A DNA stretch of 64,000 bases from Pocillopora damicornis (Eukaryota), in the NCBI RefSeq assembly GCF_003704095.1, contig NW_020846126.1, forward strand, positions 1-64,000, written 5' to 3'. The position numbers were made by a program, and so were the translations under genes. Under the pieces are notes generated by a model that had not been told where the DNA came from, searched no databases, and saw only the letters and a program-made list of their open reading frames with translations. Shown piece by piece: positions 50,780-63,891 of the stretch; the first letter of the stretch is position 1, and each line of letters opens with the position of its first letter.

Positions 50780-52728
50780 TTAATTTCTTCCATCATCATC
50801 TGAAACCGATTTCAACCTCTTGGCACTAGGTGGTGCATCTGTGGGATCTTGAGGATCTTCTACCAGCTTATTATGAACATCCATTAGGCCTTTAAAATAC
50901 TTCACAGTTCTGACTTTCAGCTCCAAGGTGGCATCATCATCAACTACAAAAATGGTCCTTGGGTGTTGCTGGAAGGCAGACACAGTGCACATGTGATTGA
51001 CTCCTTCCTCTGTTGCACATCGCAGGGCATATGCTTTGTGTACACCAGTAATCAGAATAAGAACCTGATGGATATAAAAATGATTGTTAATTAGTCAAAT
51101 TTCAAAACCTGCCCAGGATGTATTCCACGCTAAAATCTTGACAAGAAAAAGAAATGGCAAATGTGAAAAGAAACAACTAACGTGTGATACATAGTAAAAA
51201 AGTCTCAGCTTAACTCATCATACCTCAACCTAATATGGTTAGATTACACACCCAAGAAAGATGGATATGACACTTATCATTCTACATTGTATCCTGAATT
51301 CTGTGTGGACACCCTAAAATGTTGAACAATACTTCGGCTGTTTGTAATCCTGAGCAGACAGGCACTAAAGAATAATTATTAAAGTTGTGTTGTTGACTGT
51401 ACCTCATTCGCATCCATCACAGTGCCCACACCCACAGTAAGAGCCATTGTTGGTACTTTGGTCATGTCATTATCAAAGAACCGTGCATTGGCTACAATGG
51501 TTTCTTTTGCCAAGGACTTGACTCGTGTTCTTGAAACTAATGATGAGCCAGGCTCATTAAATGCAATATGACCATCACTTCCTATTCCTGTAAAGGTTGT
51601 CAAAGCAAGGTATGGGTTAGTTAAGCATGGTCAGAGAATAATAAAACAGAGCTTTATGTCATGCTCAATCTACCTAGGGAGTGTTGGTGCCTGGGGTAAT
51701 AAAAAACTTGAGGAGTAGTACTTTCCAAAAATGGGTAAACTCGGAGTTTTAAGGATCCTCAATTTGAGTCATAATTGGTAAAATCTTTCCATAAATTCTC
51801 GGTTATTTATTTTTTTCCCTTCTCTTGCCAAATTACTAGAACACTAGTAAGCATCAGGAAATACTATTTGCATCTGTAGCTAGTTACTTGGCTGAGGATG
51901 GAGAAGACAGACACAAAGGTTTGACAGGCATGAGCTTGATGATAATGATGATGATAATGATGCTGATAATGGTGATGCAGAGATGAGTTCACATTAAGAC
52001 AGTCATTAAAATATTAAGAATGAGATTCCTATTATTATCATGGTGATACAATGAAGTTAAAAATGACATTTAAGGCGTACTACACTATGCCTCTCATGAT
52101 CAAGACCATTACAGAATATGTACATACCTCCAATGAACAGATGAACTCCACCAGCATCTTTGATCTTGGCCTCAAAATCTTCGCATTCTTTGACAAGATC
52201 TGAAGCATTGCCATCTAACACATGGGCATTACTTGGGTCTATGTCTATATGCTTGAAAAAATTCTCCCACATGAAAGAGTGATAGCTTTCTGGATGATCA
52301 CGAGGAAGTCCAACATATTCATCCATGTTAAAGGTTTTAACATATTTAAAAGAAAGCTCCCCTTTCTTGTAGAATTCTACCAGCTTCTTATACATGCCCT
52401 TAGGAGTGCCACCTGAGAATAGATGTAAAATTCCCTTTTTCAGCAATAAGCACTGTTAGTATCAGGTTTCTTGCCCTGTTATTTAAAATATTTTTAAACA
52501 TTTAAAGCTAACAAAGTTCTTACTATTGAAAGCTGGTCAACTTTATGCGAACCAGCAACTCAGCAGTAAATAGGAAATGTAATGGCAAGTTTTCATTTCA
52601 GTACCTGTTGGTAGACCAAGTACAAAACACTTGCCAGGTCCTGGATTATACTTCAGTATTTTATTTCTCACATATTTTGCTGCCCACTCTGACACCTGCT
52701 CATATGTTTCCAAGATGACAAGCCTCAT
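50780..52728 (-). CDS. GNPDA: Glucosamine-6-phosphate deaminase/isomerase, 4 coding exons, about 292 aa
   Basis: Exons 52728-52605 (MRLVILE...VLGLPTG), 52412-52128 ([22 protein letters not shown]), 51587-51403 ([22 protein letters not shown]), 51064-50780 (VSAFQQHP). A 5'UTR intron is likely (donor GTAAGT at 53480, acceptor at 52740). Confidence 0.96.
51938..51978. repeat. Imperfect (GAT/AAT)n microsatellite in a GNPDA intron
   Basis: gatgataatgatgatgataatgatgctgataatggtgatg. Confidence 0.8.
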
Positions 52729-53480
52729 GATGTGTTTTTCTTTCAAGTGACAAAAGAAAAGAAGACAAGATAAAAACAAAAGCTTTAATATTTCCTTCAC
52801 AGGTTCTTTTTACCACTAATTCTTACCTACAATCATTCATATCATTCACTAACAATACCACATTTCTTCCACAAAGGAGTGGAAGCCATACCATACAACA
52901 ATCAAAGAGGTTTAAAAGGCGACCCCAGTTTTTCTTTCTTAACGTTTGGTTCAGGTGACAGTTTTTGGTTATTAATTAATTGCAATAACAAGTCTAAGTT
53001 TGTTGAGAAACACAAAAGGCTAGAGCAGAGAACAAAAACAAAAAAGAGGATGGTATCAGTTTTATATAATCGCTGGGTGGCTGTAAGAAAAGGGGAAAGA
53101 GAAAAGATGTCATTACCGAGTGGGTTCATATCATAAATACTCCAGCTGTACCTCATGAGGCACTATGGGTGGCATGGGCGTGGAAGTATACCCAACAACT
53201 TAATGATTAAGAATAACGTTTATGAGGGAGGGGTATGGGGAGTCTCGAATAGAGAAAATATGCAATATCAAAAGTATTGGTGGCTGATATTGTCCACCGA
53301 ACCTAAACATATCTCTTAGTATCAGTAATGACCAGACGACCACTATCTTCACAACTCTCGTGATGATTACATCTGATTATCAAACTAAGATTATAAGTTG
53401 AAGGCATGCTTAATTTTAGTTATCTAAACACTCACTTTAAAATTATGAACTAAGCTTATCAAACCAAGATATATACTTAC

Positions 53481-53653
53481 AATCTAACGAACGTGCAAGA
53501 CAGTAAGTAGGAGACAATGCCCTGAAGAGTGCCGGTCGCGTGCAGTCGGTGAGTGCAAATACAAAGCTCATAATCAGCGGTAGCACGTAAAAAGGGTGCG
53601 CCGTCTTCATGAAATATTTTGGCGGGTTTGCGCAGTGGTTAGGGAAAGTCAAC
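53481..53653. promoter_or_regulatory. Compact bidirectional promoter: GNPDA (-) versus micro-ORF/SLX4 (+)
   Basis: CpG-rich patch between the inferred GNPDA non-coding first exon (donor at 53480) and the micro-ORF ATGs (53609/53654). Confidence 0.6.
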
Positions 53654-53848
53654 ATGTTCACTAGGGGACTTATATTCCCGATTGTCTTTGGTGGAACTTT
53701 GATTTTATTTGGCTTCGGATTTTATCACAGGTATAAGCTGATCGTCAACCCCGCTGAAAAAGAGGAAAGAAGGAAGTACAACATACAGCAGGCGCTGGAA
53801 TTTCGTCGTAAAGTTCAAGAGAAAATTGACGAAAAGGTTAATCCTTGA
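53654..53848 (+). CDS. Putative single-pass membrane microprotein (64 aa; 79 aa from the upstream ATG at 53609)
   Basis: MFTRGLIFPIVFGGTLILFGFGFYHRYKLIVNPAEKEERRKYNIQQALEFRRKVQEKIDEKVNP*: one hydrophobic segment of about 20 aa followed by a charged helix. The ATG at 53654 has A at -3 (gtcaacATG). Protein-like composition. Confidence 0.6.
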   Translation: MFTRGLIFPIVFGGTLILFGFGFYHRYKLIVNPAEKEERRKYNIQQALEFRRKVQEKIDEKVNP

Positions 53849-54009
53849 TCGCCAGCCTAGTGTAACCTGTGGGATCTTGAGGATTTAATTTAATTTAAGT
53901 GCAGGTCCAAACTTATATTTTAATCGACTTCTTTGTTTATTGAAAGTGAATTAACATGTTGATCGGTGGCAATTTGTAAAGGATATTATGGGAAAAACTG
54001 CATTTATAG

Positions 54010-57000
54010 ATGACGGGTGAAGTGAAAGGAGCACAGTCCAAACGATGCTTGTCGCGTAAGAAGCAATCTAAATCTTGGAAATTTTCGAAAAATGATCACT
54101 GTCTAAATGAAACTGCCAGTGGAACTTACACAGCCCTCAGATCAAGACAATCAGCTCTCTCAAGCCCGAAAGAAAGTTCTAATCATTTAGCAAGTTTATC
54201 AGTGATAAATACTAAAGATATTGACTGTGTTGGTGATGATTACCTCAATGCTGAACTAATCGCAGGGGTGACAGGAGAGCACACAACTGATGTGTTTAAT
54301 TTTTGTGAGACTGAAGGCGAGGGTGATGATGGGAAGTCAACGGCTGTGGATGAGTTATATGGCAGTAAACGCAAGAGGATTGACACTGAAGAACTTGAAT
54401 CTGCAAGCTCTGCTCATGTGTTTAAGTTTAAAAGGACCCGCAATGCTATAAATCTAAAGCAAGCTTCTTTGTGCCTTGAAAAATGCCAAACTTACAGATC
54501 CAAAACTGTGAATCCAAAGGATGCTAAATCCACTAATGAGACTGACTTCAGAGATAATATCAAAACTTTGTCCTCAGAAGATGGTTCATTGCACCAGGTG
54601 CATGACATTAATGTTGTTGTAGGTAACATTGTATTAAAAAATATGAATAAAGAGAATCTGGATAAAGAAAATGCAGATGAAATGGATACTGTATCCAATG
54701 AAGAAACTGCAAAATATACAGAGCATTCTGATGAGAAGCAGAACTCTTCAAATGACAGGGTTTGCCCAGTCTGCAGTTTCAGCTTCATATCAGCAGAAAA
54801 TTTGGATACCATAAACAAACATATTAATAGTTGTCTTGACAACTGTTCCGATAGCAGGGTCAAGGAACAAGGTTCACAAGAAGTGACTTGTGAAGGGATC
54901 GGAGAGGACTTGTATTTCTGTCAGCTATGCCAAAAGGATCTGTCAAGGATGAACTCACAGAGACGTCAACAACACTTAAACCGTTGTTGTGATCAGGCCA
55001 ATGAAAAGGAAATACTTCAGTCAAATTCAGTTCCATCTCAGGCTCAATGTCCTATCTGTGGGAAAAGATTCAAAACACCAAAGGTTTTTTTGTATTTTTG
55101 GTGTGCTTTTTTTGTTTGTTTGTTTCTTATTGACATTATCATTTACAATAATTGTTACTGGGGTCATTGCAACTCTATTTGCCTTTACTTTGATTCATCT
55201 CTTCTTAGACAATCTCAATTTCTAATGATTGATTTTGCTAGTCACCAGATAACTACATGTAGCTTACAATGTAGCAGCACAAACTGCAACATCTGCTGAA
55301 TAACATCATCCATCCTTTGAATATGATTATTGATTCTCTAAAGATGTCACTTTAGATTGTGGTTCTCTATTTGCTGCTGATATGTTCATGTTTCAATGCC
55401 TGCAGGCTCGCCAAATACATCTCAAGAAATGTGCTCAGCAGTACAATGTAGAGACGGATCAGCTGTTGGAGATTGTACGTCGGGAGAAACAGCAGGAAGA
55501 CAAGACTTCTGTAACCACTGGGTCTGCGGAAAATGTGCTTCCTTCTAGGAATCTTACTGGAGTGAAAAGAAAAAGGAGAGGTACTGCAGTCAGGGGGTAA
55601 GAAATATGCATTATTCTCAACTTTCTCATATGGTATCAGTTTTTAGAATATTCCTTTTTATTCTTACAAATATCTGAGATGACACTTGCTTTGGGTAAGT
55701 GTCAGTAGACAGAAAGCTCTTGCCTAGCAGATTAACTGGTCAGCCCATGTTAATATGTCTACAAACTGACTAGAAAGTAGTTGACAAGATACAACATGTT
55801 AACTCAAATCCCATTATATAATTTTATTAAAATTGAGTAACAGAGACGGTATCTGTTGTCTTTCTGTATTTACACAACAGTTTTGTAGTGATTGTGGTGT
55901 TGTCTTTGCTACTTTCCAGTTATTTAGGTTTTCATTGAGAATTTTTAGTAGCACAAGAATAGTGTGAACAAACAGGAGAATAATCTCAATCCTCTCTGAC
56001 AATTAAAATTAAACTAAACAATTCTCCACTTTCCAATTCTAAGTGCATGAACACCCAGCTATTTGAAGCTTCAATACATAGTGTAGTAGACTCCTCAGAA
56101 CCATCAGAGTGCATTATTAGATGGAAAAACTGCTGAAATAGTAGTTTTTTCCTTCCATTTACCCTTGCACTCTATAGAGCGATTAAAATGGACCTTGGTA
56201 GAGAGAGTGATTTGAACCAGTTTTTTTTTCTTCCCTTAGTGACTTTGATGAGGAAACTCAGCTTGCTTTGGCTTTGTCAGCATCCATGGCCCCACCCCTA
56301 CCCCCACAGGCACAGGCCAAAGGTGTGAAGGGCAAAGGAAAGAAGATGAAAGGGTAAGAACTGCTAATAAAGGCATATTCATCACAAATAAGTTGGATTA
56401 ATTTCCCAGGAGAAAGTCAATTTACACAGTGACTTATTTTGTCTTAATGTTTTCCACTAATGTATGTTTTGTGTTTCCTTAGTGGTAGTGAACTGCCAGC
56501 ATTGTTGCTTAGAGATGATGAAAGTGCTCAAAGAGCCGTTATGATGAGAGCAGCTCAGGTTCTTTGCACAGGAGTATGTTTTATTTTATTCCATTTTTTT
56601 AAAATCAGAAATTGCTGTATAACCTAATGGGTTTTGCACCCTGGGGTGACATTAAGTTATTTTGAGTGATTGTTCAGGTGAGGGTAGTCTGTTGTCAGTG
56701 ATTGGTGACTCTTTGAAAGTTTGAGTGGAAGTCATCATCACAGTCAAGTGTTGGGTCATACATATCAATGATATGATATTTTATCAGAATTTAATCAATA
56801 AATACAATGAGAGATGAAGATGAATACTCACTCATTCACTCATTTGCATACTCATCCAATGTTTATGATAGTCAGTAATAGGAGTAAATCTCCTCCGTGC
56901 TTTCATTTTGATATTTGGTCAAACATTAGAGAACATTGAAAAAGTTAACAATGGTCTGATTATAACATGAAATCCTAGTATTTTATATTTTCTTTTGTAT

Positions 57001-60000
57001 ACTCTAAAGGAAGAAGTTGATGAGGAGGATGAAATATCATGCACTCCTGCTCTTGCTCCAAGTCGATTAGCTCAGAATATTCCAAGCAATCAACTTCTCC
57101 CTGGCAAAGAAACACTACAAGAGCATCCTACTACTTTTGCAAGTACATCAGAGACCATCAACATGATTGGATTAGATTGCAGTACAGTAGAAGGCAAGCA
57201 CATGTGTGCAAACAGTGGAAATAATGCTGCCATAATGAAGGAATATTTTGCCTCTGTTGATCCTTCACTAAGCAGATCATTTCTAAATGTTTTATATGCT
57301 GGTGAAAACAATGACAGTAACCCATGTCAACCAAAGGTAAGTTCTCAATTTTATTTATTAATTTTTTTTTTTTGCTCTTTTTACAAAAATTTGTTCAGTG
57401 TTTACAATGAGCATTTGCCAGTGATACACTGCCCTAATTTTTCTAAGGCCTTATGTTCAGTTTTTGTATTGTGATGTAATCTTGTGCAGTTAAAGTACCA
57501 AATGTTCCACTTTGTTAAACAGGCACCAACTTCCAGTCCACTTTGGTCATTAGCATCCACAAAGGACCAGTCCTATCAGGAATTCTATGTACAAGGCCTC
57601 TTGCCTCCTGCTTCACCAGTTCAGAAGAATGTTTCCTGCAATACTTTTCATGATCAAGTTGCTGCAAATGCTGCCACTAAAGAGGAGACATCAGGCCCTG
57701 TGCAATGTGAATCAAACATGCAAGTGTCAGGAAATCCAAATGGAGTTGGTGAATGTGAAGAGATAACACCATCACAAGCTATGAATGTACAAATGTTGAT
57801 GGATCTTTGTGGTGATGATGACATGTCTAAAGTTTTAGCAAACCCCCAGCAGATGGTAACAGCCATGGGTTTCTGTTTTGATGAAAAAGAGAATCTAAAT
57901 ATTCATGAGGTAAATTATGATCATTTGTTCAACCCTGAACAACAGTTTCCTTGCCTGTGAGAAAATGCATTTATTAACCATTTAAGCCTTATATTTTCTT
58001 TTTGTAACATCTTTTGGAATCATTGACCAGGTCTTGAGATAAGTTATAAATGTTTACTATTCCTGCAATACTGTGAAGTGGCATGGAAATCTTTGTTATC
58101 TTTCTTCTCTTGATTAGGGAACTCATATGGTCCCCAGTGGAGTTTCAAAATTGCTTCAAGATTTATCATCCATGGTAAACAACTCATGGCTTAGTGATGT
58201 TGTTATTAATCTGAAAGATGGCCAAAAGTTGATGGCACACAGCTTTATTTTGTCTCTCAGATCCAATGTTCTTTCACAGGTACATGTCCCATTTCTATTT
58301 CATTAATAATGATTTAATGCAAGAGACCTCTAGTTGCTCTCTTCATTTGACTACTACTAAACTGATAGAGTTCTTATGTGTGCCTACATGTCTAAGAATA
58401 CAAGATTTATACACTTAAGTATTATTGTTTTTAACAAGTGGAAGGTCATTTACACTTAACAAAAACATACAAACAAATCCATATTTGCCTGAGAGGTTGC
58501 GTAAAAGAGTTCATTTGAATCTGCCGTTGATTCACAATACCTTCTACTTTGCTTTAGATGTTGGAGGAACAAAGATCTGGATGTAAAGATGGAGGGCTTC
58601 TTAATCTACAGTTTGAGGAAGTTGAACAATTTGTTTTCGAAGTTACGCTAAGGCACATTTATACTGGTGAGGTCATCATCCCTGAGCATTGTGCATTGGG
58701 TGCCTTAACAAATTTGGCTGAAAGGTAAAACATTACAAAACGTACTTTACAAAAACATTTCAGCGGCAGGGATACGAAAATATTTATATAAAATGTTTGA
58801 ATTGTTTTACACTGTTTGTTTGTAGGCTTGAACTGCCATGCCTTCTGAAAGCATGTAAGGACACTATGTTTCGGTTAAAGCAAGCGCAAGAAAATAAAGA
58901 TGGTGATGAAATTAGAGATTGCGTCGTCATTGATATGAAAAAATTTGAGCAAGATATTGAGCAAGTTATTTGGACAAGTGATCAACACAACGATTTCGAC
59001 TTGGATTTTCAAACTCCGCGAGATGAAGAACAGGAAGGTACAACTGACCAGTTAAACGATGAAGACATCGAAGAAATAATGATTTTCCAAACTCAATCAC
59101 TTCAAAGGGAAGGGAGTGAAAATTTGAAGGAGAGCTCGAAAAATCCATTAAGCCTGAATGAACAACAGTCAAGCAAGACAGAAGCAGATTTGACAGGTAA
59201 TTATCGAAGCAAGTCTGTTGAAGAAACATCTGTGGAAGATTCAAATCCTTCTGCGTCTAATGGAAAAGAAAGTAAGTTGCAAACACTCTCCAGAGATGAT
59301 AATCCGTCGTATATTACTATTGAAGGTATTGATGCGTCACCTAATCTTCCTGAAGAAGATGATTGGTCACGTAGTCCTGTCAAACAGACAGGAAAAAAAT
59401 TGCATGATGATGCTGAGAAAGGAGAGAAGTTCCAATTTAATGGCTCATATGCAAGAGAAAGTATCGTTGAGGAAGATATAAGTATCAAGAGGGAACATTT
59501 ATCCCTTCCAAACGAACAAAGGGGAAACAAACTACTTCACGATCACTATACATTGACAGAGTCTTGCGAGAATGATACGTTTTCACCTGACTCTTGTAAC
59601 AAACCTGTTACAGGCGGAGAAACAATCAGCAACCCGGACGATGTGGAGGTACAGCGGCATGGGATAAGACAAATTTGTACACTTGAATTGGAACAGTCCG
59701 TTGATAGTAATGACAAATTACACCTTCCTGAGGAATTTTTGGAAATCGATGTTAATGTGGATAATTATCCCGAGAATGCCGATATCTATAACGTGTCTAC
59801 AGATCTGTTAAATGATGCAAATCAAGTCAATCATGATGATGCTGGGGAACCAGATGTATCAGGTGAATTAGACGTATCGGGTGAAATTCAACCAAATTGG
59901 TACCAAGATCTTAACATTTTGGAGGAAAGCTGCAACAAGCCTGGCTGTGCAAATGTGTTTGTACCGGAAGAGGAAGAGAAGCGGGAAAAGGAAGACTTGC

Positions 60001-63000: not shown

Positions 63001-63891
63001 TGAAAGCGCTGCACTTACCTGCGCGTTGAAGCAGATGCTTTGTTAATGTTCCTCTGGGATATGGCCTATTGTCTTAGGGAATTAGTTAATACTTTTTTTT
63101 TGTCTTTTAATTTTTCTCCAGCCGCACTGTATAATCTTTCATTTTGTGTTTGTTTGTTCAGTGATCAGGAGGATACAGAATTTGGAGACTGCACTACTCT
63201 GATTGAAGATGACGTCATAACAGCATCTCAGCAGGTACAAATCTTCTCGAAAAGTTGAAGTTGTGATGCTTGATAACCCAATTGGAATAAAACGCCCTTG
63301 ATTAACAAGAATATCTTACAACTGATTATAACTAAAGATATCGCGGAATGGAAAGTTTATAAGTTTGAAGGAAATGAAGCTATATTTTGTTAAAACATAG
63401 AGATGATTATGTCAGTGTTTCCAACATTTCCAATTTTTTCCCTTTCCTAAAAGATCAACGGAGGAGATCTGAGAGAGAAGCTGGCTTGTTATATCCGTGA
63501 TAACAAAGAGCTCTACCAAAAAGTCTTACAGTTTCAGGTAAAGCACAGAGATCTCTAAAGGGAGAGTTGTTCAAATCTTAATAAGCCTTAAGTTAGATAT
63601 GTTACGAGTGAATAATGTTATTCTCACTCTCAGTTGTTGATATATATATATTTATATCATCTTCTGGTTCTCCTGCGCGTTATTTTTCGAGCGCGGAGGG
63701 AGAATTAGGGACGCATCTTTCCTAAGTTTTGAAAAGAGCGGAAAAGAGAACTGGTCTCACCACGCGCATATTTCATGTGGTACTTGTCTGTTTCCTCACA
63801 GCCACTAGAGTTAGCTTCACTGCATCAACAAATTAAATCTGACGGCATCAGTTGTTCTTTGGGAAAACTTGTGGATTTCCTCGACCAGCAG
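54010..63891 (+). CDS. SLX4: Structure-specific endonuclease scaffold SLX4 (BTBD12/FANCP), 3'-partial
   Basis: About 15 exons. UBZ fingers (FCQLCQKDLSRMNSQRRQQHLNRC; CPICGKRF...HLKKC), MLR (DEETQLALALSAS at about 56250; LWSLAS), BTB (LLQDLSSMVNNSWLSDV...AHSFILSLRS, about 58150-58270), SAP (PVTPMPNY..MATPVLKNELYKFGVRALPKKKMILKLKEIYDYTH), SLX1-binding domain (LYQKVLQFQPLEL...LVDFLDQQ). Final exon lies beyond the window. Confidence 0.94.

Follow-up and report, generated by a model that had tools for sequence, protein, structure and literature searches.

The stretch analysed here (hereafter the window) comprises 64,000 nucleotides (nt) of the coral Pocillopora damicornis (NCBI RefSeq assembly GCF_003704095.1, contig NW_020846126.1, positions 1 to 64,000 of the forward strand). 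It carries a GNPDA gene on the minus strand and, diverging from it, a probable gene for SLX4, the main DNA-repair nuclease scaffold. Between the starts of these genes lies an open reading frame (ORF) of 64 codons, here referred to as the micro-ORF. The data discussed below suggest, with a probability of roughly 0.8, that the micro-ORF is a genuine gene for a 64-residue single-pass membrane microprotein and that it forms the cap-proximal first cistron of the SLX4 mRNA. A first-pass annotation, made from the sequence alone, had drawn attention to the intact 64-aa ORF, to an AT-rich gap of 161 nt lacking AATAAA before SLX4, to a possible splice donor inside the ORF, and to an AG directly before the SLX4 ATG; each of these points was confirmed from the sequence. 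The elements of the arrangement are as follows.

53640-53653, + strand: very short 5′ leader; the earliest RNA contig start is at 53640
53654-53848, + strand: micro-ORF, 64 codons plus TGA (ATG at 53654, TGA at 53846-53848)
53849-54009, + strand: intercistronic spacer, AT-rich, 161 nt, 34% G+C, poorly conserved except for the last ~45 nt
53956-53979, + strand: tiny upstream ORF (uORF), 7 codons; comparable tiny uORFs are present in every relative's spacer, at approximately the frequency expected from composition
53988-54020, + strand: mini-uORF, 10 codons, overlapping the SLX4 start out of frame, with its stop TGA within SLX4 codons 3-4
54010-55081, + strand: coding part of SLX4 exon 1 (N-terminus MTGEVKG..., UBZ-like zinc fingers), in the same exon as the micro-ORF
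55404-55595, 56239-56352, 56482-56573, 57010-57334, 57521-57907, 58116 onward (to 58200), + strand: SLX4 exons 2-7, with GT..AG joints in all four RNA runs

The micro-ORF product, 64 aa in length (MFTRGLIFPIVFGG...EKVNP), has one hydrophobic helix followed by a charged tail. From its stop codon to the SLX4 ATG at 54010 there are 161 nt without AATAAA or ATTAAA, and neither hexamer is present in any of 13 spacers. An alternative in-frame ATG at 53609 would give a 79-aa version; this version was rejected, as relatives do not conserve the 15 additional residues and all RNA contigs start downstream of that ATG, the earliest at 53640. The micro-ORF family is single-copy in this genome.

Conservation and family identity of the microprotein

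Homologues of the microprotein were recovered at increasing evolutionary depth. A word-indexed search gave 18 proteins at 67-98% identity, and an exhaustive profile search of 1.84 billion representatives gave 14 clusters (50%-identity representatives) down to 29-42% identity. Profile searches with wider alignments gave 63 and then 74 clusters, all with E <= 3e-13 and with nothing between that value and E = 10. The homologue clusters total about 80, are without a Pfam domain, and carry names that go no further than "hypothetical protein". The proposal in the first-pass annotation of an unannotated microprotein is borne out by these searches and, as judged from its sequences, the family is sharply delimited and unnamed. 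Its members are 53-119 residues long as called, with a core of 64-76, and the first ORF has 64-70 codons in all loci. The conserved residues are R4, F8-P9, F12-G13, G-F-Y at 22-24, R26, E35, and A47..F50. One candidate from the metagenome scan, L036, was discarded as a false match (an unrelated AT-rich frame with multiple transmembrane (TM) segments).

Pairwise dN/dS for the micro-ORF is 0.08-0.30, compared to 0.32-0.56 for SLX4 exon 1 in the same pairs (13 measurable pairs from six coral-type genomes). The DNA of the relatives has an identity to the window of 73-89% over the ORF, compared with 36-61% over the spacer and 66-75% over the initial 600 nt of SLX4. The dN/dS values are far from ~1, in keeping with the earlier proposal. 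As far as such comparisons of coding sequence reach, they show that the micro-ORF is under purifying selection at the protein level. With homologues at 26-98% identity and a low dN/dS, it is far more than a chance open frame.

The micro-ORF also lies close before SLX4 at 16 other loci (L026, L007, L009, L027, L028, L008, L010, L031-L035, L021, L019, L024, and L025), where L008 and L010 are short contigs from the species of L007 and L009, and L031-L035 are five metagenome contigs. Over the close-spaced loci, the distance from the micro-ORF to SLX4 exon 1 is 113-257 nt. In L026, L007, L009, L027, and L028, the micro-ORF is positioned 183-257 nt upstream of the SLX4 exon-1 homologue and GNPDA is located upstream; the spacing is close in L008, L010, and L031-L035 as well. 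L021, L019, L024, and L025, in which the microprotein has only 35-43% identity, carry an SH3-domain or other gene on the upstream side. Here, the SLX4 zinc-finger exon follows within 113-253 nt, and then the BTB domain and the conserved C-terminal part. The pairing between micro-ORF and SLX4 hence survives a change of upstream neighbour, which indicates that the linkage follows SLX4 and not the GNPDA promoter. These loci show that the linkage is old. In L020 and L029, the SLX4 zinc-finger exon, which is the first coding exon, is located 5.4 and 7.6 kb downstream of the micro-ORF, a distance that fits a leader intron.

RVT_1 retroelement ORFs are present at L009 5143-5730 and L027 5004-6198, between GNPDA and the micro-ORF in one locus and inside the SLX4 region in the other, and the spacing from micro-ORF to SLX4 is untouched in both despite their presence. 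In the most divergent group (26% identity), a gene for a GNAT-type acetyltransferase on the minus strand lies between GNPDA and the micro-ORF (L029 8749-9255 and L030 8467-8973).

The AF2 model of the microprotein, based on a 46-sequence alignment, has a pLDDT of 82.7 and predicts helices at residues 3-24, 26-30, and 33-62. An N-terminal TM helix (about residues 3-24) would be followed by a kink at a conserved N-P and by a charged helix at 33-62. The best 19-residue window has a mean Kyte-Doolittle hydropathy of 1.97, and the TM segment starts at ~residue 4-5 (average of 46 members). The N-flank carries a charge of +1 and the eight residues after the TM segment +2.4 (likewise averaged over 46 members), while the tail is 44% charged with a net charge of +4. 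The predicted architecture is that of a signal-anchor protein. In this context, PIGBOS1 is a 54-aa mitochondrial outer-membrane signal-anchor microprotein with its TM segment at 7-29 (PMC6814811). The likeness, which is at the level of architecture only, consists of a single TM helix that follows ~6 N-terminal residues and precedes a charged C-terminal region, and the microprotein conforms to the PIGBOS1-type pattern of a moderately hydrophobic N-terminal TM segment with a positive C-terminal flank. PIGBOS1 differs in that it is a separate gene, antisense to PIGB.

The first-pass annotation had noted a resemblance to SMIM20/MITRAC7. The two are of similar size, and both have a short N-terminus, one TM helix with F-G-G ... 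F-Y, and a polar tail. However, the microprotein lacks the phoenixin-type C-terminus and the SMIM20 profile hidden Markov model (PF15061, curated cut-off 27 bits) has no match at E <= 10 to the ORF or to 33 relatives. A Pfam scan of the same 34 sequences gave no significant or consistent family. Six-frame genome searches with PF15061, PF09803 (PET100), PF14880 (COX14), PF15932 (DUF4748), PF15141 (UQCC3), and PF07960 (CBP4) never matched the ORF. The PF15061 search instead located the canonical SMIM20 of this coral elsewhere, at C4392:214515-214613 (37.6 bits), as a gene of two exons (L012 1486-1599). An hhalign comparison of the family with the coral's own SMIM20 exon gave a probability of 4.6%, which is not significant. 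The resemblance therefore does not amount to membership of the SMIM20 family.

A broader version of this idea takes the microprotein for a diverged paralogue that acts in respiratory-complex assembly and is related to SMIM20/MITRAC7 or to another known small assembly factor of the inner membrane, such as UQCC3/Cbp4, COX14, or PET100. Its nearest neighbours in a language-model comparison are UQCC3, DUF4748, CBP4, PET117, SMIM20, and COX6C, all of them small mitochondrial membrane factors, at 0.76-0.86 and thus below the 0.9 line. Moreover, COX14 gave weak matches in 3 of 19 members (best E 0.029), neither UQCC3 (PF15141) nor CBP4 (PF07960) has a match anywhere in the 234-Mb assembly in six frames, and, by eye, F-G-G and F-Y are as distant from Met1 as in the coral SMIM20 exon. 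Against this stand the Pfam, six-frame, and hhalign results described above, and a profile search of the PDB and a Foldseek search with the AF2 model, both of which returned nothing. In addition, PET100 (C3794:78865), DUF4748 (C436:21112), and SMIM20 are each found once elsewhere in the assembly. We consider such a paralogue unlikely, and the general idea of a small mitochondrial-type membrane factor, which the first-pass annotation had also raised, serves as a lead only.

RNA contigs across the micro-ORF and SLX4

The RNA data are Logan contigs from four runs of four studies (X1, X5, X7, and X8), mapped over 52300-58200. The contigs start at 53640 (X5, where adapter letters precede the start), 53663 (X8), 53691 (X1), and 53692 (X7). 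In X5, X8, and X1 they are unbroken through the micro-ORF, the spacer, and the SLX4 ATG to 55081. In X7 this stretch is split into two contigs at 54046/54048, and their word depths are nearly equal (23.1 vs 22.7). The X5 contig, which is 3,957 nt long, crosses six joints (55081>55404, 55595>56239, 56352>56482, 56573>57010, 57334>57521, and 57907>58116). All of these are GT..AG, which shows that the contig derives from spliced RNA. The first-pass annotation had set unspliced passage through this region against a junction 53836>54010, and the contigs run unspliced from their starts at 53640-53692 through the ORF and the spacer into exon 1. The true transcription start site (TSS) probably precedes the micro-ORF AUG by no more than about 30 nt.

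The same arrangement is seen outside this species. In L032, a JGI metagenome contig of 7,184 nt, the micro-ORF occupies 21-221, the spacer is 218 nt, and the SLX4 ATG is at position 440, with 1,921 codons open after it to the end of the stretch examined. Pieces of the window that are separated by introns abut one another in this contig, which is hence of the cDNA type. L034 and L031, with 700 and 433 open SLX4 codons, respectively, are arranged as L032, and the distance from contig start to micro-ORF AUG is 12-29 nt in all three. That the micro-ORF and SLX4 are part of one mature spliced mRNA is well supported by these spliced contigs, which join the micro-ORF to SLX4 exons and favour the bicistronic mRNA among the alternatives raised earlier.

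The contigs could also be explained by two transcription units, a short micro-ORF mRNA that ends in the spacer and an SLX4 mRNA that starts inside or just before it, if the assemblers merged the two RNAs. Contigs cannot prove single molecules, the AT-rich spacer has TATA-like runs, and the depth of the exon-1 contig is below that of the downstream SLX4 contigs in X1 (82 vs 137) and X8 (25 vs 44.5). However, there is no poly(A) hexamer in the 13 spacers, in three species the full-length spliced contigs have their start shortly before the micro-ORF, and in X7 the depth is equal on either side of 54047. Moreover, the linkage survives both the change of upstream neighbour and a 5-8 kb insertion. 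Two units are for these reasons quite improbable.

A few minor signals were seen among the contigs. Only X1 has a contig, at a depth of ~107, over 56634-56830 within the intron 56573-57010, where the other three runs have zero; in this sample the intron may have been retained or an alternative exon used. Unspliced contigs of low depth (~5) cross SLX4 intron 1 (55055-55433) in X1 and X7, and the X7 contig differs by 3 inserted nt after 55273 and by the loss of 1 nt at 55319. Both contigs may stem from pre-mRNA or from carried-over DNA, and an allele difference may be involved.

Leader design and translation

The micro-ORF AUG has a purine at position -3 in 14/14 loci. At the SLX4 AUG a purine is present in 2/14 loci and T in the other 12, the window among them. 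As judged by these bases, the start-codon contexts are shown to favour the micro-ORF over SLX4 consistently, and the purine in all loci gives indirect support to the view that the micro-ORF is translated. On established scanning rules we infer that most ribosomes would start at the micro-ORF and that SLX4 would be reached only by leaky or reinitiating ones. The start contexts agree with the earlier suggestion that the micro-ORF is "translationally limiting" for SLX4, and the limitation itself would follow from the scanning rules.

The mini-uORF sits in the conserved last ~45 nt of the spacer. Its ATG and frame are retained in eight coral-type loci, where it has 10-12 codons and encodes peptides that end in DDG or HDG. 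Folding of the spacer RNA gave no extra stability relative to shuffled sequences (z = +0.86). ATF4/GCN4 leaders act by delayed reinitiation. As in leaders of that type, there are several uORFs here, the last of which overlaps the main start out of frame. The difference is that the first ORF has 64 codons and is protein-coding, whereas theirs is a reinitiation-permissive uORF of 2-3 codons.

Given this design, the micro-ORF could be a regulatory uORF only, in which the nascent peptide acts in cis to stall ribosomes for control of SLX4 and the released peptide is without function. The further uORFs and the weak main AUG in the leader would agree with such a role, as would the lack of a known function for the peptide. 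Known stalling peptides conserve mainly their C-terminal codons. The last residues and the stop position are instead the least conserved part of the micro-ORF, while constraint extends over its whole length and F-P, F-G-G, and G-F-Y are invariant in the hydrophobic helix across 26-98% identity. This makes a purely regulatory role very unlikely.

Largely refuted in this genome is the membrane-tethered SLX4 isoform of the first-pass annotation, in which a phase-0 intron of 173 nt (53837-54009) would fuse the TM peptide in frame to SLX4: the candidate ends GAAAAG/GTTAAT (53836/53837) and tttatag/ATG (54009/54010) are present, a YAG right before the SLX4 ATG is retained in six coral-type loci, and L020 has a donor GAG/GTGAGA four codons before the micro-ORF stop, but no 53836>54010 joint exists in the four RNA runs (all of which have the six downstream joints), 5/5 aligned relatives lack the donor GT at the corresponding position, the spacer length modulo 3 differs among species, the cDNA-type contigs L032, L034, and L031 retain the full spacer, the conserved TAG before the ATG is explained equally well by the overlapping mini-uORF region, and the L020 acceptor with the best pyrimidine tract leads to a stop after 13 codons.

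The consensus donor in this distant relative is at L020 10190-10210, with the first SLX4 coding exon 5.4 kb downstream, and one of several possible acceptors would be in frame with SLX4. In three family members the C-terminus reads ...K(E)VRL, as if this donor had been read through.

Returning to the micro-ORF as first cistron, the data can be combined into the following model. The SLX4 mRNA would be transcribed from a bidirectional promoter shared with GNPDA, and the micro-ORF would have no 3′ end of its own. Ribosomes would first meet the micro-ORF AUG, which has a good context and a distance of ~15-30 nt to the cap. The SLX4 AUG, 161 nt beyond, would lie behind two small uORFs, the last of which overlaps it, and in a poor context with T at -3. 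In this scenario, the microprotein would be the main translation product of the leader, and SLX4 would be made only by leaking or reinitiating ribosomes, such that the leader holds SLX4 output low. The N-terminal signal-anchor helix is expected to insert into an organelle membrane, with the mitochondrial membrane as the leading guess and the endoplasmic reticulum as a possibility, and the positively charged C-terminal helix would then face the cytosolic or matrix side.

Several points weigh against this model. The RNA evidence consists of assembled contigs, which may merge overlapping transcripts and from which the TSS, the poly(A) site, and relative levels are not resolvable, and an additional SLX4-only transcript may start inside the spacer. 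The first cistron is long for efficient reinitiation. Each spacer has 2-7 further ATGs, which is about the expectation from composition, i.e., ATGs are not depleted. Finally, the suggested localisation derives from the architecture and from language-model neighbours that score 0.76-0.86, below the line of 0.9.

Conserved uORF-encoded microproteins on bicistronic animal mRNAs are known, e.g., MIEF1-MP, SLC35A4-MP, and ASDURF. A further example is Drosophila Sloth1/Sloth2 (PMC9681215). These cases and the present one share a small ORF under protein-level selection before an unrelated coding sequence on one mature mRNA, and several of them are small proteins of the membrane or mitochondrial type. 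Here, in contrast, SLX4, a scaffold of DNA repair, is the partner of a new, unnamed family, a conserved mini-uORF overlaps the main start, and translation is predicted. A literature search for an SLX4 uORF or a bicistronic SLX4 mRNA returned nothing relevant. The kind of element, a conserved uORF-encoded microprotein, is already known, and the novelty lies in the family, in its partner gene, and in a leader design that is conserved.

Conservation over large evolutionary distances is rare among uORF-encoded proteins, and every example of it shows that truly bicistronic mRNAs exist in animals. The present case would add an unnamed protein family with SLX4 as the downstream partner. Its leader design (a strong first AUG, a weak SLX4 AUG, and an overlapping mini-uORF) leads one to expect that translation of SLX4 is tightly limited. 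The conserved gene is absent from current coral-type gene sets, and the 5′ untranslated regions (UTRs) of SLX4 in these genomes should not be treated as non-coding. As a speculative extension, to which we give low odds, the microprotein and SLX4 might be an ancient obligate pair, in which the micro-ORF, the spacer uORFs, and the mini-uORF form a translational switch that ties the SLX4 level to the cell's translational state or to the condition of an organelle membrane, and in which, in some lineages, splicing of the L020 type might alter or fuse the products.

The flanking SLX4 and GNPDA genes

The probable identity of the downstream gene as SLX4 was examined by searching its exons individually. 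Exon 1 gave zinc-finger matches and, more weakly, matched an SLX4 chain in the PDB (E 0.48), and its N-terminal sequence is conserved among relatives. The window has a BTB-like match at ~58172-58291, and the orthologue L025 has a clear BTB domain (E 4e-8). The match to the C-terminal Slx4 domain, in the first row below, is the sole one in the whole genome. On the other side, GNPDA and its promoter region add three features.

63799-63891, + strand: exon-split, partial match to PF09494, the C-terminal Slx4 domain, at 18-20 bits and so short of the cut-off of 24.8
52603-52728, - strand: GNPDA first coding exon, matching residues 1-42 of human glucosamine-6-phosphate isomerase (1NE7, E 1.2e-15)
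53481 to ~53560, - strand: GNPDA non-coding first exon (5′ UTR), spliced to the coding exon 52603-52739
53576-53605, no strand: block TCAGCGGT...GTGCGC, conserved, in the bidirectional promoter of ~75 nt that separates the start of the GNPDA transcript from that of the micro-ORF/SLX4 transcript

The divergent first exon of GNPDA, which the first-pass annotation had placed less than 200 bp from the micro-ORF, is real according to both the match to 1NE7 and the RNA. The joint 52739<53481 has CT..AC ends and is present in three RNA runs, in which the exon side extends over as much as 80 nt. The 5′ UTR exon is roughly 95 nt from the micro-ORF AUG. Its position, as given by the RNA joints, indicates that both genes diverge from a promoter of roughly 75 nt. 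In the six-species DNA alignment, the block at 53576-53605 consists of invariant columns, and the other upstream DNA cannot be aligned.

An exact repeat of 18 nt, CTGTGGGATCTTGAGGAT, is present on the + strand both at 50839-50856, in the last GNPDA coding exon, and at 53867-53884, in the spacer. It had no equivalent in 100 shuffles, and TTGAGG alone is retained in relatives. A "loose end" at 53867 in all four RNA runs resembled an antisense splice and was set aside as an artefact of this repeat, which the depth arithmetic fits (204 x 9 / 197). Given the position of the two copies, the SLX4 leader RNA would be perfectly complementary to 18 nt of the GNPDA mRNA.

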